A stretch of DNA of 64,000 nucleotides from Phaeosaccion multiseriatum (GCA_965112735.1 OZ218954.1:1178001-1242000), one strand, 5' to 3'. Numbered from the stretch's first letter, positions 26,952 through 64,000 are shown. Program-made: numbers and translations. The notes: generated from the sequence alone by a model not told the origin.

Positions 26952-27045
26952 TCAGCCCCCCTCGTAATAAGACTCCCCTGTGGTAGTGTTGTACCAATAC
27001 GGATAGCCTTGATCATCCGCATACTGCTCCCACTCCCCATTCTCC
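26952..27045 (-). other. C-terminal WW domain of the giant gene
   Basis: [26 protein letters not shown]; the second Trp is replaced by Tyr. Confidence 0.85.
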
Positions 27046-30000
27046 CCTCCCACTCCCTCCTCCCCTCCGCCGTACTCCTCCACCGGGAAGAGCTTGGCAA
27101 AGTCCGGCACCTCTCCCCCTAGCTCCTCCAACCTCTTCACCACCTCCATCCTTCTTTGCTCCACCACGGCCAGTCTTCCTCGAAGCTCCTTCAACAAGGC
27201 CCTCTTGTCTTCCAACAGCCGCTGATGCTGAGCTTCCCTCTCCGAAGGCCGCAGATTGGCATCGTGCTTCGCCTTGTCCGCCTCCCCGTCGTCCTCGACA
27301 GCCTCGAGTCTGCGCAAGAGAAGCTTGCGACACATGGTAAGGGCATCCCGGCGAGCGGTGATGGCCTCGCGCATCTGCCATTGGACCTTCGGTGGTGATG
27401 GAAACGCGCATTCGATGGGTGGACGGGTGAGAGAGGAGGTGATGAGGGTGTGAGGGGTGGTGTGAAGCGTGTGTGCCAGGGCGGCGGATAGGGGGGTTGG
27501 AAGGCCGGGTTGGTGGTTAGAAGGGGGTTAAGGTGTGCATGTTCAAAAGCAAGGCTTCCGTGGGACCCTGTGGGGCCAAGGAGGGGGGGAAGACCACTTG
27601 AGACAGATAGAGGGAGGGGGAGAGAGAAGGAGAGAGGGAGAGAGAGAGACCAGACCACTATCGGCCGCTCCTGCCCCCAAACAAGCTCAACAACTACTAC
27701 GTTCTGCATTGCTAGCAGTACTAAGCCTGTTGTCCACGTGCGTGCGTGCGTGCGTGCGTACGTGAGTGCGTGCGTGGGGCACCTCTCTCCCTCCTTCTCT
27801 CACCTCCTCGACCTTGTTCTTGGGCTTGAGGGCCTCGATAAGTCCCTCCCGGCGCTCCTTCTCCCTTTCCACCTCCTTCAGGGCCTCCTCCGCCTCGGCA
27901 GCGGCCTTCTCCTCTGCCAACTGTTGTTTGGCTGTTGGTGGCGTGTTATTAGAGCATACATGTCAATGAGTAGAGGCATCAGCGCAGTGGAGAGAGGAGG
28001 CGTGTGGTTTGGTGGGGCGTGTGAGGTATCACACAGAAGCACAGCACAGCACAGCAAAGCTCAGCAATTGGTGGTACAGTATACCTCAATACACCACAGG
28101 AAAACACAGCTTCTCCTCGTTCTTCTCCTCGTTCTTCTCCTCCTCCTCCTCTTCCTCCCCCCAAACTCACTCTTCTTAAGCTTCCTCTCCTTCTGCCCGC
28201 GGGCGGCCGCTGCCTTTTTGGCCTGCTTCGCCTCCTCCTCCCTCGCCTCCTCGAAGGCTTTGGCTTCTTGCTCCTCCTTCAGGCGCCTCGCCTCTGCCTT
28301 TCTCTTGTTCTCCTCCTCCAACTCGTCCAACCCACCCTCCGCCCGCCTCCGGATCAAACCCTGTAACCGCTTCTCCTGCAGCTGAAGGGCCTTCTCGTCC
28401 CCCTGGTCCTGTAGGACCAACTGCTCAAGCAAAGTCTGCTCCGCCGCCGCCGCCGCACGAGCATTCAAGGCACACCACGCCCTTCCACCCACGCTGCCCC
28501 CATCATCCAACGATGATGGTAACCCTCCTCCCTCACCCTCACCCTGAGCCCCCTGGGGACCGCCATTACTGTTGTTGTCATCGCCTGTGACAAGGCTCCT
28601 GACCGCCAGCAGCGCCGTGTCCTGAGGATGCGCGGCTTCAAAGGCGTCGGCAGCGGCTTTCGCTTCCTTCTCCTCCAAAGCGAGCATGTCTTCCATGTGG
28701 TACGCCGCCCAGGCCTCTGCGCGGTTGGTACTCCAGGCGTCGACAACGTCCGACACGTACTCGTCCTCCCTCGGAACGGAAACGGCGATGATGGCACCGG
28801 ACGACGGTGGACTGCCTTTCTCCTCCCCCTTCTCCTTCTCCTCGTCCTTCTCCTCCTCGTCCTTCTCCTCCTCGTCCTTCTCCTCCTCCTCGTCCTTCTC
28901 CTTCTCATCCTTCTGGACCCCGCCCTCTTGTTCACCCCCCTCCCTGCTGCTCTGCGCCTCCGCCTGCACGCCTATCTCTGCCGCGGCCCCTGCTGTATCA
29001 CCACCTGCTGCATCTGCTGTGGCCTTGGCCTCCGCCTCCAGTCTGGCTTGTCTGTTCTGCGCTGCCAGGGTTGTCTTGAGGGCCACCGACTCGTTCCACT
29101 TCCTTGTGGCGAGGACAGCGGATGCTGCCTCCTCCTCGCTTTCAAACATGGCACCCCACTCTACCGCCCACTCCTCCATGCGAGCCAGCTGTGAGTGCGG
29201 AGCGTGTGCGTGAGTGTGAATGTGAGTGGGGAGTGGGAATGGGAGTGAGAGATAAGTCAGTGGTAGAAAGACGAGAGGAGCAGCGAAAGAGGTGAGAGGA
29301 AGGTGTGGCAGTAGCGACTTAGGCACGTGAACAGCAGCAGGGGGGTGGGGCGGGGGGGCACATGGGAGAGGGCAACAACCGATGGGATGCGGCACACTCA
29401 CGCACAAACACACACACACACACACGCACATTCACACACACTCATACTCCCATACACACACGCACGCACACACGTACAAGCACACCGCGTCCTGTCTTCT
29501 AACCTGAGCCTCTCGCACAACCTCCGCGTTAAAGCGTGCCCAGAGCTCTGCCTGCAGACGGGCCTTGGCAGTCATGTTGGGGTTCTCATCTTCGAGGATA
29601 CCCAATACCAGCAGGGCAGTGTCGTTCGGGTACTGAGAGGGCAGGGGGGGGGGGAGAGATGGATGGAGTGAGGGATGAAAAGAGAGAGAGCAAGCGACCG
29701 AGAGGGGGGAGGGAGGGGAGGAGAGACGAGGAAAGAAGGGGTTATCGTTGCATATATAGGTGGGAAAGACGAAGCGAGCCTCATCCGTCAACGAGTGTGG
29801 GAGGGTGTGGGCTTTGTGTGCCGGCCTCCTTGGGTAGGCTCACGCACTCATGCACGTATGCACTTCCACGTACACTCACTCACTCACTCACACATTCACA
29901 CACTCACTCACTCACATACACACTCATTCACTCACTCAGTGACATACTCACCATGTATTCAAGCTCCGCAGCAAGGCGTTGCTCTTCCTTGCATACCCGG

Positions 30001-63000: not shown

Positions 63001-64000
63001 GGGAGGGAGGGAGGGAGGGAGGGAGGGATGATGAGTACGGTGCGTTGTGGTGGTGTAGGGCTCGGGAGAAGAGTCACACACTCATTCATTCATTCCCGCT
63101 CTCTCTCTCTCTGCGCAGACTCTCGCTTTCCTCTGTCTCCCTCTCTCTTCTCCCCCCCGCCGCTCTCTCTCCCTTCCCAGTCTATGGTTGGCCTTAGCAA
63201 AGAACGATAAAGCCCGAACCGAACCTTGAGGCCTTCGTCTGTAATTCCGCTGCACCCGTCGAATCGAGCCTCCTCCAGCGTATCCCCAAGGCTCCTCGAG
63301 AGAGCTACCAAAGACCGATCCCGGACCCTTCCGTTACCCGACAGGTTGATGACCGTGAGGCGAGTGCATGCCGTGAGAAGCTTCTCCATGCTGTCGTCGC
63401 TGACGCCGCTCCCGGAGCGGGATAGATCGAGGCTGCGAAGGGAGGGGCTCAGGGGGAGGAGGGCTTTCACTCCGTTGTCGGTCAGGCGAGGGGCACCTGA
63501 GAGGTTCAGATAACGGAGAGACTGAAGATGCCGTACCAGAGGAGAAGGAGAGGGAGGGGGGGGGGGGGGGGGGGGGGGGGTGAATGAAAGGAAGAGTGGG
63601 ACATGTTTACGATGCACGCACGTACAGAGAGAGAGACGGAGATGGGAGCTCAGAGGAGGCTTACAAAGAGAAAGGAAATCACAAGGGAGAAGAATCGCCT
63701 GTGCCTTGGCGTATCCCTCCCTCCTCTCCCTCCCTCCCTCCCTCCCTCTCCCTCCCTCCTTCCTCCCAACTTCTCCAGCTCACCCTGCAAGTGACCGCAA
63801 TGACATGAGCGCACGCATCGTCCAGCAGAGGGGAGTCAGGCAGTTCCAAACGCTCCAACTGGCTCTGACCCAAGCTAGCCCCCAGCAGGCGACAGAGGGG
63901 CAGAGGGGCAGGATCGACGAGCCCACGAATCCTCAGCCCGGAGAAGCTGCTGTTCACTGACAATAGGTGGCTGATGCTGGTGTCGCTTAGGCGAGTCTCC
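26952..64000 (-). CDS. Giant multidomain protein (>=59 exons, ~4,700 aa in window; N-terminus beyond right edge): LRR, Sfi1-like, IQ, KOW-like, C2, F5/8-like, Ig/Zn-ribbon, MORN, dynein-stalk-like, coiled coil, WW
   Basis: Phase-consistent exons: 64000-63784, 63521-63225, 62913-62617, 62229-61759, 61554-60526, 60087-59684, 59456-59264, 59038-58463, 58166-57921, 57643-57558, 56444-56292, 55905-55734, 55372-55175, 54672-54523, 54228-54181, 53727-53641, 53317-53046, 52875-52716, 52407-52312, 51714-50341, 50124-50005, 49648-49577, 49300-49131, 48642-48529, 46743-46489, 45292-45166, 44938-44762, 44525-44445, 44182-44096, 43838-43767, 42966-42841, 42524-42343, 42007-41779, 41482-41365, 41071-40906, 40664-40543, 40286-39790, 39309-39134, 38861-38667, 38330-38258, 38080-37904, 37701-37565, 36690-36394, 36063-35862, 35553-35444, 35040-34929, 34537-34472, 34184-33885, 33626-33528, 32662-32534, 32317-32180, 31672-31535, 31398-31111, 30644-30240, 30047-29952, 29632-29504, 29188-28171, 27931-27804, 27386-26952. 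No internal stop, and the summed length fits whole codons. Confidence 0.85.
31682..31950. repeat. (TAGGG)n intronic array
   Basis: Reads (CCCTA)n on the sense strand, directly before the acceptor at 31673. Confidence 0.95.
32850..33485. repeat. (GATA)n microsatellite
   Basis: ~630 bp inside intron 33527-32663. Confidence 0.95.
35862..38330 (-). other. MORN-repeat region of the giant gene
   Basis: [71 protein letters not shown]. Confidence 0.9.
36770..37375. repeat. GGATGGYAGT decamer satellite with higher-order units
   Basis: Visible directly. The same decamer recurs in many introns (e.g. 35093, 36085-36370, 39315-39420, 48668-48860, 54860-55155). Confidence 0.9.
45452..46475. repeat. 14-bp minisatellite (CCTACCCATACCCA)n, ~1 kb
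   Basis: G-rich on the sense strand, starting just after the donor at 46488. Confidence 0.95.
46750..48203. repeat. (TTGGG)n array, ~1.45 kb
   Basis: Near-perfect pentamer array; reads (CCCAA)n on the sense strand, ending at the acceptor at 46744. Confidence 0.97.
48600..50370 (-). other. C2 domain of the giant gene
   Basis: Spliced sequence [55 protein letters not shown]...[23 protein letters not shown], with the Ca2+-binding Asp residues retained. Confidence 0.9.
56568..57557. repeat. (GACT)n microsatellite, ~1 kb
   Basis: Reads (GTCA)n on the sense strand, and its first unit is the intron donor AG|GTCAGT. Confidence 0.97.
61340..64000 (-). other. Leucine-rich repeat region (FBXL/AMN1-type) of the giant gene
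   Basis: Repeats such as [68 protein letters not shown]. Confidence 0.85.
62285..62597. repeat. (GGGTATA/GGGGTAT)n heptamer repeat
   Basis: Fills most of intron 62616-62230. Confidence 0.9.

Follow-up and report, generated by a model that had tools for sequence, protein, structure and literature searches.

We asked whether a repeat-rich stretch of Phaeosaccion multiseriatum DNA (GCA_965112735.1 OZ218954.1:1178001-1242000) encodes one giant protein or a row of smaller ones that merely appear continuous. The window, by which we mean the whole 64,000-nucleotide stretch analyzed, is eukaryotic DNA of about 58% GC that is dense in tandem repeats, and a bacterial-style listing of its open reading frames (ORFs) returned only fragments, on both strands. 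Fragments that look like protein, including leucine-rich repeats (LRR), IQ-like helices, a C2 strand, MORN repeats and long coiled coils, all lie on the minus strand, and we therefore read the gene from 64000 to about 26950. An initial annotation had joined these fragments into one scaffold of 59 exons and more than 4,700 amino acids (aa). We put the probability at roughly 80% that positions 26952-64000 on the minus strand hold a single protein-coding gene with no fewer than 58 exons and 4,582 codons, belonging to a conserved family of scaffold proteins that carry a dynein-type stalk and no motor.

The gene was modeled with our own Viterbi exon chainer, which combined codon log-odds, iteratively trained weight matrices for GT/AG splice sites, intron-phase bookkeeping that allows split codons, and an intergenic state that could be left out. 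Unaided and blind to the previously proposed exons, it returned 59 exons encoding 4,269 aa on the minus strand. Refinement consisted of penalizing non-triplet microsatellites, adding tblastn hints from homologues, and making two manual corrections (exon 62229-61759 joined to 61554, and 36690-36394 joined directly to 36063), such that the exon chain is a prediction from DNA plus homologous proteins of other organisms. Junk exons of the early models (such as 54985-54854, 49979-49853, 35834-35739 and 36369-36226) were intron minisatellite and were removed or replaced after the homology hints were added. The refined model runs from 63999 to 26955 in 58 exons, encodes 4,582 aa with no internal stop, and is followed by a stop codon at 26952-26954, which coincides with the lower boundary (26952) given in the initial annotation. 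Its first exon crosses the window edge at 64000, which places an N-terminus of about 220 aa outside, judging by comparison with the orthologue P0018 described below. The exon count and length originally proposed are close to those obtained here.

The 57 introns have a median length of 311 nucleotides (nt) and a maximum of 1,785 nt. Their splice sites are conventional, with GTGAGT as the commonest donor and CAG as the acceptor in 46 of the 57. Tandem repeats occupy 57% of intron bases as compared to 8.5% of exon bases, in agreement with the description of a gene hidden among microsatellite introns.

How much does a long, stop-free chain prove? With a high gene-boundary penalty, the same chainer linked the full 64 kb as 95 exons. 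Given the opposite strand of the span, it returned a stop-free chain of 45 exons and 2,476 aa, and on locally shuffled sequence it still yielded chains of 830-1,150 aa. A chain that keeps phase and meets no stop is thus no more than chance would give, and the chain alone cannot separate one gene from several because the chainer also joins the entire window, the wrong strand and shuffled DNA. Chainer scores did differ (1,814 bits on the minus strand versus 530 on the opposite strand and 150-190 after shuffling), in a comparison that is partly circular given that the chainer was trained on the minus strand. Consistent phase without a stop over 37 kb had been offered as the reason to see one gene; the chain itself exists as described, but it does not argue for one gene over several.

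We judge the gene to be real because of orthology, that is, the existence of collinear single-ORF orthologues, and not because the chain lacks stops. When the 80-aa exon 34184-33945 served as query in an exhaustive search run without a profile, 19 relatives were recovered. Other protein-search queries returned little: the 370-aa exon 61563-60454 had no match, the relative P0018 matched only P0022 and two unrelated giants, and a profile of the stalk region (A1, see below) matched only two Logan fragments. The family is rare in the searched protein collection at the permitted lengths.

Among the relatives, P0018 is a protein of 3,274 aa encoded by one uninterrupted 9.8-kb ORF on a 33%-GC marine picoeukaryote genomic contig, where it lies between a TCTP gene and the remainder of the contig. 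Pfam finds LRR, C2, IQ, F5/8-type-C and MORN in it, and the stalk-exon query matches near its C-terminus. P0022 (3,244 aa, 40% identical to P0018) is also a single ORF, positioned between TCTP and a convergent gene, and it is identical in three independent sources: an ENA assembly, a Logan assembly and a JGI metagenome. At a third locus, L002, two ORFs are joined in frame by a 119-nt intron (GTAAGT donor, TACTAAC branch site, TAG acceptor) to give 3,780 aa. Shorter combinations are found by Pfam in P0019 (C2, Ig and MORN) and P0016 (F5/8-type-C, Ig and MORN).

The spliced window protein aligns with P0018 in four collinear blocks: model residues 38-355 with 256-625 (E 4e-11), 1026-1470 with 1146-1587 (E 6e-20), 2030-2784 with 1715-2468 (E 6e-53), and 2980-3664 with 2571-3224 (E 2e-102). 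It is likewise collinear with P0022 and with the joined L002 protein. Aligned block lengths are near those of the intronless orthologues (445 versus 442 aa and 755 versus 754 aa), homologue alignments cover 2,773 of the 4,582 aa, and 36 of the 57 junctions fall within gap-free alignments to at least one homologue. Across some joins the orthologue sequence is reproduced exactly, as where the window residues FVKLFEED that follow a join correspond to APIYPYATKQFYELFEKD in P0008. Between the blocks lie three acidic inserts of low complexity that are specific to the lineage, each contained in or spanned by one open exon. These bridging exons are 61554-60526 (LRR and repeats), 59038-58463 (repeats and middle block) and 51621-50341 (linker and first C2 strand). 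With intron-poor orthologues encoding everything from LRR to stalk in one ORF, and window exons bridging the domains, the proposal of one gene rather than several is upheld.

One competing explanation for a single chain is that two or more adjacent genes on the same strand, for example an LRR-IQ-C2 gene and a discoidin-MORN-stalk gene, were fused by a chainer that joins anything, as its results for the whole window and the opposite strand attest. Under a low gene-boundary penalty, the chainer indeed prefers splits near 63.1/61.9, 50.3/50.1 and 35.8/35.5 kb, the orthologue in Choristocarpus is annotated as two genes, and the window gene is a prediction from DNA. However, the split at 50.3 kb falls inside the C2 domain and that at 35.8 kb between the MORN repeats and the conserved stalk-base exon, and the flanking parts are contiguous in every homologue. 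We rejected the low-penalty splits since conserved domains would be cut. Moreover, all domains share one ORF in both P0018 and P0022, single window exons bridge LRR to repeats, repeats to middle block and linker to C2, and the Choristocarpus gene is cut inside its discoidin domain with its downstream protein flagged as partial. A set of separate genes is accordingly quite improbable. Even harder to credit is a decaying pseudogene or a repeat assembly artifact. Introns composed of 57% tandem repeat and three long low-complexity coding stretches might raise that suspicion, but open frames are kept in all homology-supported exons, 36 junctions match orthologues without gaps, and block lengths agree within a few residues.

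Several observations weigh against a single gene of exactly this structure. Homology support is absent for 21 of the 57 junctions, including the final pair (junctions 56 and 57), which join the tail by phase compatibility only, and those beside the three low-complexity linkers. Some exon ends are approximate, as illustrated by a surplus of 16 aa in coiled-coil 1 of the stalk. None of the 19 relatives comes from Phaeosaccion multiseriatum, and the best identity is 45%. Finally, in Choristocarpus tenellus (L003; GCA_964200185.2, CAXNAD020000006.1, 1-28991) the corresponding region is annotated as a gene for 2,317 aa and a neighboring one for 1,292 aa (partial), which counts against one gene insofar as these are two. 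Since the boundary between them falls inside the F5/8-type-C (discoidin) domain, this split is probably a gene-model error in the public annotation, and it bears out the expectation that annotation would break a gene of this kind into several. Gene callers that split or truncate the gene leave the family invisible in current annotations.

The predicted domain order of the protein is LRR, Trp-repeat and IQ helices, a middle block, C2, an IQ array, discoidin, Ig, MORN, a stalk with a microtubule-binding domain, a helical extension in this lineage, and a WW-like end. The stalk belongs to a motor-less dynein-type module at 31520-35553 (minus strand), spread over eight exons: 35553-35444, 35040-34881, 34537-34472, 34184-33885, 33626-33528, 32662-32534, 32317-32180 and 31672-31535. 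The first of these encodes a conserved base motif, followed by coiled-coil 1, the microtubule-binding domain (about 34100-32534) and coiled-coil 2. Exon-wise Pfam searches gave no match to a stalk, and the 80-aa exon alone reached no better than E 1.6 against the PDB, in a match to a dynein chain at the right position. Because single exons are too short, the claim of a dynein stalk could be tested only with a family profile, and A1 is such a profile, an alignment of the stalk region of nine homologues with 379 positions.

Searched against the PDB, A1 matched about 50 dynein heavy chains, always at the stalk, with a best E of 8.7e-16. The matches came in two pieces, one covering coiled-coil 1 and the first helices of the knob at the stalk tip and the other covering the last knob helix and coiled-coil 2, and the hallmark Pro-Pro and Trp residues were conserved and aligned with those of dynein stalks. 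The best chains were axonemal inner-arm dyneins (DNAH6, DNAH2 and DNAH1, E 1e-11 to 1e-16), with cytoplasmic dynein-1 at about 1e-6, which is a weak hint at an axonemal ancestry of the stalk. Some high-scoring chains of 4,069-4,730 residues bear the labels 'Radial spoke head protein 9 homolog', 'CFAP57' and 'malate dehydrogenase 1B'; these are presumably heavy chains as well, because their length and match position equal those of the named heavy chains. AlphaFold2 folded A1 with a predicted local distance difference test (pLDDT) score of 87.8 into two long antiparallel helices (72 and 90 residues) joined by a helical knob. All of the top 50 Foldseek matches to this model were dynein, the match to the dynein stalk having a probability of 1.0, and target-normalized template modeling scores against crystal structures of entire stalks were 0.71 (3WUQ), 0.62 (5AYH) and 0.65 (8I3J). 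The spliced window protein matched A1 over positions 1-377 of 379 (E 2e-124), through exons 36063 to 31398. These results strongly confirm the dynein stalk of the initial annotation.

No AAA+ ring or other dynein-heavy-chain domain was found by Pfam in P0018, P0019, P0016, P0001, P0002 or P0017. The stalk of the window protein sits between MORN repeats and helical sequence, and it is preceded, directly after the MORN repeats, by the family-specific motif F..LFE.D...YDGVYAM.VA.KLP.LP.GVDP. By sequence and predicted fold, the protein carries a complete dynein-type stalk with its microtubule-binding domain and no motor, and it is not a dynein, because AAA and dynein-heavy-chain domains are missing and the stalk is set between MORN repeats and helices.

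Downstream of the stalk, a helical and low-complexity extension occupies 28085-31398 (minus strand; exons 31398-31111, 30644-30240, 30047-29952, 29632-29486 and 29188-28085). It aligns to P0016 up to residue 1699 and to P0001 up to residue 1221, corresponding to model residue 4034. Picoeukaryote orthologues have no such extension and end about 50 residues after the stalk, which is why we consider these roughly 900 aa, by alignment, specific to part of the family. The tail at 26955-27920 (minus strand; exons 27920-27804 and 27386-26955) consists of a coiled coil and a C-terminus that is at best WW-like. Pfam scores it at E 4e-4 and 20.8 bits, below the WW cut-off of 26.9; Tyr stands at the second Trp position, and the protein ends 5 residues later.

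It is conceivable that the gene ends before its last two exons and that this tail (27920-26955) is a separate small gene or non-coding. Consistent with an earlier end, homology support is missing at junctions 56 and 57, exon 29188-28085 passes at its end into a triplet microsatellite, an in-frame Met occurs near the start of the last exon, the WW score is under the Pfam threshold, and the picoeukaryote orthologues and P0019 have no comparable tail. On the other hand, a homologue of 1,881 aa at L004 (GCA_977009655.1, CDRMYX010002273.1, 5990-6733) is followed, after a single in-frame TAA, by 241 codons on the same strand and in the same frame. These codons encode a K/E-rich stretch, a coiled coil and, at the contig end, EWETYWDETYQCWAYYNNETG, matching the window tail with a local alignment z of 4.6 that none of 500 shuffles reached. 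The in-frame TAA in L004 could be a tiny intron, a site of stop-codon read-through or a sequence error. Within the window, the tail ORF is phase compatible and finishes on a clean stop. We find an earlier end unlikely and retain the tail as part of the giant gene. The suggested WW domain accordingly gains from the recurrence of the tail behind the L004 homologue while falling short of the Pfam threshold.

At the N-terminal end, LRR sequence extends over 61380-63999 (minus strand) in exons 63999-63962, 63432-63225, 62913-62617 and 62229-61759 and the start of 61554-60526. Single exons gave LRR_6 at E 5e-4 and sub-threshold LRR_4 and LRR_1, the best at 20.3 bits versus a cut-off of 23.4. Its counterparts by alignment are the LRR portions of P0018 (256-625) and P0022 (270-627), and both the first ORF of L002 and the upstream gene in Choristocarpus match LRR_FBXL15. 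The LRR of the initial annotation, sub-threshold by exon, is consistent with these orthologue matches.

Next in order is a Trp-repeat array at 58946-60831 (minus strand; exons 61554-60526, 60087-59684, 59456-59264 and 59038-58463), which had been assigned to Sfi1. By motif spacing (alignment A2), it comprises about eight helical repeats, each ending in hydrophobic-x-x-W and spaced about 30-33 residues apart. A profile of the repeat refound 8 copies in the model and 0 in the orthologues, and it matched no Sfi1 chain in the PDB; Pfam found no Sfi1 at E<=1 in the exons tested. What remains of the Sfi1 assignment is a periodic Trp motif that lacks a Pfam or PDB-profile link and is not recognizable in orthologues, and the assignment is not confirmed.

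A conserved middle block follows at 52312-58570 (minus strand), containing IQ motifs and a small beta-rich domain, in part of exon 59038-58463 and in exons 58166-57921, 57643-57558, 56444-56292, 55905-55734, 55372-55175, 54672-54523, 54228-54181, 53727-53641, 53317-53046, 52875-52716 and 52407-52312. Its clearest IQ match is at 56294-56443 (E 7e-7, 28.9 bits, Pfam cut-off 20.3). The beta-rich domain is encoded by exons 55372-55175 and 54672-54523 as GDAVxII-E-H-FKGMS|GRVLMIED and is conserved in alignment A3, where the family pattern is GDAVxII.E.H...GM(S/T)G.VL.I(D/E). It had no Pfam match, and an AlphaFold model of A3 reached a pLDDT of 50, too poor to name the fold.

An acidic, Ser-rich low-complexity linker specific to the lineage (50437-51621, minus strand) shares exon 51621-50341 with the first strand of the C2 domain. 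This exon is free of stops throughout, and residues 412-447 of P0019 match its end by tblastn at 50436-50338. The C2 domain itself spans 48529-50436 (minus strand) in five exons, from the end of 51621-50341 through 50124-50005, 49648-49577, 49300-49131 and 48642-48529. A 40-aa window exon alone matched C2 in Pfam at E 0.0026, the region can be aligned with C2 domains that Pfam recognizes in P0018 (E 4e-22) and P0019 (E 1e-18), and junctions 20-22 are validated, all of which bears out the C2 domain previously proposed. Asp residues look to be in place in the Ca2+-binding loops 1 and 3 (AMD..SDPF and YDDDKFGTD) when compared by eye with the synaptotagmin pattern, the spacing of the last Asp being one residue short.

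Beyond C2, a second IQ and helical region (42343-48600, minus strand) is collinear with P0018 1715-2468. It comprises exons 48642-48529, 46743-46489, 45292-45166, 44938-44702, 44182-44096, 42966-42841 and 42524-42343. IQ motifs score E 1.4e-5 and 24.9 bits at 46491-46742 (cut-off 20.3) and E 3e-3 at 42345-42524, with further sub-threshold copies on both sides of C2. By profile score, IQ motifs are certain at two sites, as claimed (28.9 and 24.9 bits), and likely at several more.

The discoidin (F5/8-type-C) domain and the Ig domain that follows it are encoded at 40167-42007 (minus strand) by exons 42007-41779, 41482-41365, 41071-40906, 40664-40543 and 40286-40167. Single exons here had no Pfam match of their own. 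P0016, which aligns to them, has a discoidin match (F5_F8_type_C, E 1.6e-11, 44.8 bits, cut-off 28.2) and an Ig match (Ig_3, E 2e-8, 35 bits, cut-off 30); P0018 also matches F5_F8_type_C (E 7e-7), and junctions 30-34 are validated by up to 7 homologues. The Ig domain of the initial annotation is thus supported through an aligned orthologue, and the discoidin domain before it had been missed. After exons 39893-39544 and 39309-39134, a conserved beta-rich exon (38861-38667) and a MORN array complete this part of the protein (35862-38861, minus strand), the array being encoded by exons 38330-38258, 38080-37904, 37701-37565, 36690-36394 and 36063-35862. MORN repeats are certain, as first noted, with Pfam finding 5 stretches at 36396-36689 (E 9.7e-18, 63.4 bits, cut-off 22.5) and a further match at 37567-37701 (E 4e-4). 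All homologues match this region by tblastn, and junctions 38-43 are validated.

Within the same span, plus-strand ORFs of 188-425 aa had no Pfam match and overlap homology-supported minus-strand exons, and a search for nested RNA genes found no tRNA and no Rfam family. The introns contain several large arrays. (GGGTT)291 at 46748-48204 (97% matches) is a telomere-like 5-mer in an interstitial position and makes up most of the 1.8-kb intron from 48529 to 46743. Other intronic arrays are (AGAT)158 at 32851-33485, (GGAG)78 followed directly by (TGAC)71 at 43103-43710, and, in the second IQ region, 73 copies of the 14-mer CACCTACCCATACC at 45451-46472. We counted 29 plus-strand and 15 minus-strand copies of the 10-mer GGATGGCAGT, as compared to about 0.1 expected by chance. 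Nearly all of these copies lie in intron minisatellites of this gene, at 35092-37378, 39313-39473, 48660-48877, 54854-55145 and elsewhere.

Its sequence relatives place the family in ochrophytes (brown algae, Phaeothamnion and Chrysoparadoxa) and in marine picoeukaryotes, the named members being from Choristocarpus, Discosporangium, Laminaria, Phaeothamnion and Chrysoparadoxa. TCTP lies immediately upstream of the giant gene in each of the two AT-rich picoeukaryote contigs (L001 903-1409 and L005 9037-9489), and this shared order suggests that the source organisms are related. A full-text literature search returned nothing relevant on a motor-less dynein stalk or on the combination LRR-IQ-C2-discoidin-Ig-MORN-stalk, in keeping with the earlier statement that no characterized protein of this architecture was known. 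All of the domains are known; their combination, above all a stalk outside of dynein, is new to us.

What might such a protein do? The simplest reading of the whole is a long Ca2+-sensitive tether from a membrane or organelle to microtubules. Its stalk would present a dynein-type knob to the microtubule lattice and bind passively, like a microtubule-binding domain held in one registry. Binding would likely be constitutive, because no AAA+ ring slides the two helices, or else be set by contacts of the base motif and the MORN repeats. The C2 domain (probably Ca2+-dependent), the discoidin domain and the MORN repeats may hold a membrane or other surface. The IQ regions and Trp repeats could form long single helices coated and stiffened by calmodulin- or centrin-like light chains, and the LRR and WW-like end might serve as protein-docking sites. 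From this arrangement we infer a role as a Ca2+-regulated tether between membrane and microtubules.

The microtubules in question could be those of flagellar roots, axonemal doublets, the cortex or the spindle. Placement at the basal body or flagellar root is plausible, and it is reasonable in that every named host forms flagellated cells and axonemal dyneins have the stalks most similar to this one. An alternative that the data allow equally, and that we rate below even odds, is that the same protein links microtubules of the cortex or spindle to the plasma membrane or to an organelle, in the manner of junctophilin or ASPM. C2, discoidin and MORN are generic binders of membranes or other surfaces, IQ arrays combined with microtubule binding recall ASPM, and nothing in the sequence is specific to the axoneme. 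Against a cortical or spindle role stand the flagellated cells of every named host and, as a weak hint, the axonemal inner-arm chains that best match the stalk. At either site, this work nominates a protein of about 4,600 aa as a probably Ca2+/calmodulin-regulated link between membrane and microtubules in brown algae and their relatives, whose flagellar-root and cortical cytoskeleton proteins are, to our knowledge, largely unknown.

Comparison with known systems places the protein most firmly beside its own orthologues. Those of Choristocarpus (CAM9103228.1 and its upstream neighbor), Discosporangium (CAM9672084.1) and Phaeothamnion (CAM9758471.1) have the same domain order and are 34-51% identical over the MORN-stalk half; they are annotated merely as unnamed partial products, and none is characterized. 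Sfi1, a centrin-binding protein of spindle pole bodies and centrioles, shares with the window protein a hydrophobic-x-x-W-(K/R/other) motif every 30-33 residues along a long predicted helix, although the window repeats have no profile match to Sfi1 and the orthologues have no recognizable repeats. MORN tethers such as junctophilins, TbMORN1 and the radial-spoke protein RSPH1 have a MORN array in common with it, but they are 10 to 20 times smaller and have no microtubule-binding stalk. ASPM (abnormal spindle) is, like the window protein, very large, with many IQ-type helices presumed to be coated by calmodulin-like light chains and a part that binds microtubules. In ASPM, however, it is the N-terminal region and CH domains that contact microtubules; C2, MORN, discoidin and dynein-stalk modules are all missing from it, and no homology between the two was detected in this analysis. 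The window protein would thus recall ASPM or junctophilin only functionally, by analogy.

The closest structural parallel is with the dynein heavy chain (Pfam PF12777 'MT'; 3WUQ, 5AYH, 8I3J and 3ERR). Both have an antiparallel hairpin of near full stalk length with a helical knob at its tip, a PP before the long knob helix and an invariant Trp. Dynein additionally has an AAA+ ring, a linker and a buttress; the window family has none of these, and its stalk base is closed by a family motif of about 60 aa after the MORN repeats. In dynein, the AAA+ ring sets microtubule affinity via the registry of the coiled coil; because ring, linker and buttress are all absent from the window family, no ATP-driven registry shift should be possible. 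As far as we know, this stalk with its microtubule-binding tip has been regarded as belonging to dynein heavy chains alone. We regard the odds as evenly poised that stalk and microtubule-binding domain are an autonomous, transferable module, either copied from an axonemal dynein by an ochrophyte-or-earlier ancestor or predating its acquisition by dynein, and built into a giant calmodulin-decorated membrane tether, giving rise to a class of microtubule-associated protein that grips the lattice as dynein does yet without ATP-driven release. A motor-less stalk family implies that the module can fold, and presumably work, alone. It would thereby offer a natural 'fixed-registry' stalk for studying how affinity is set, and it bears on the origin of the stalk in dynein itself.

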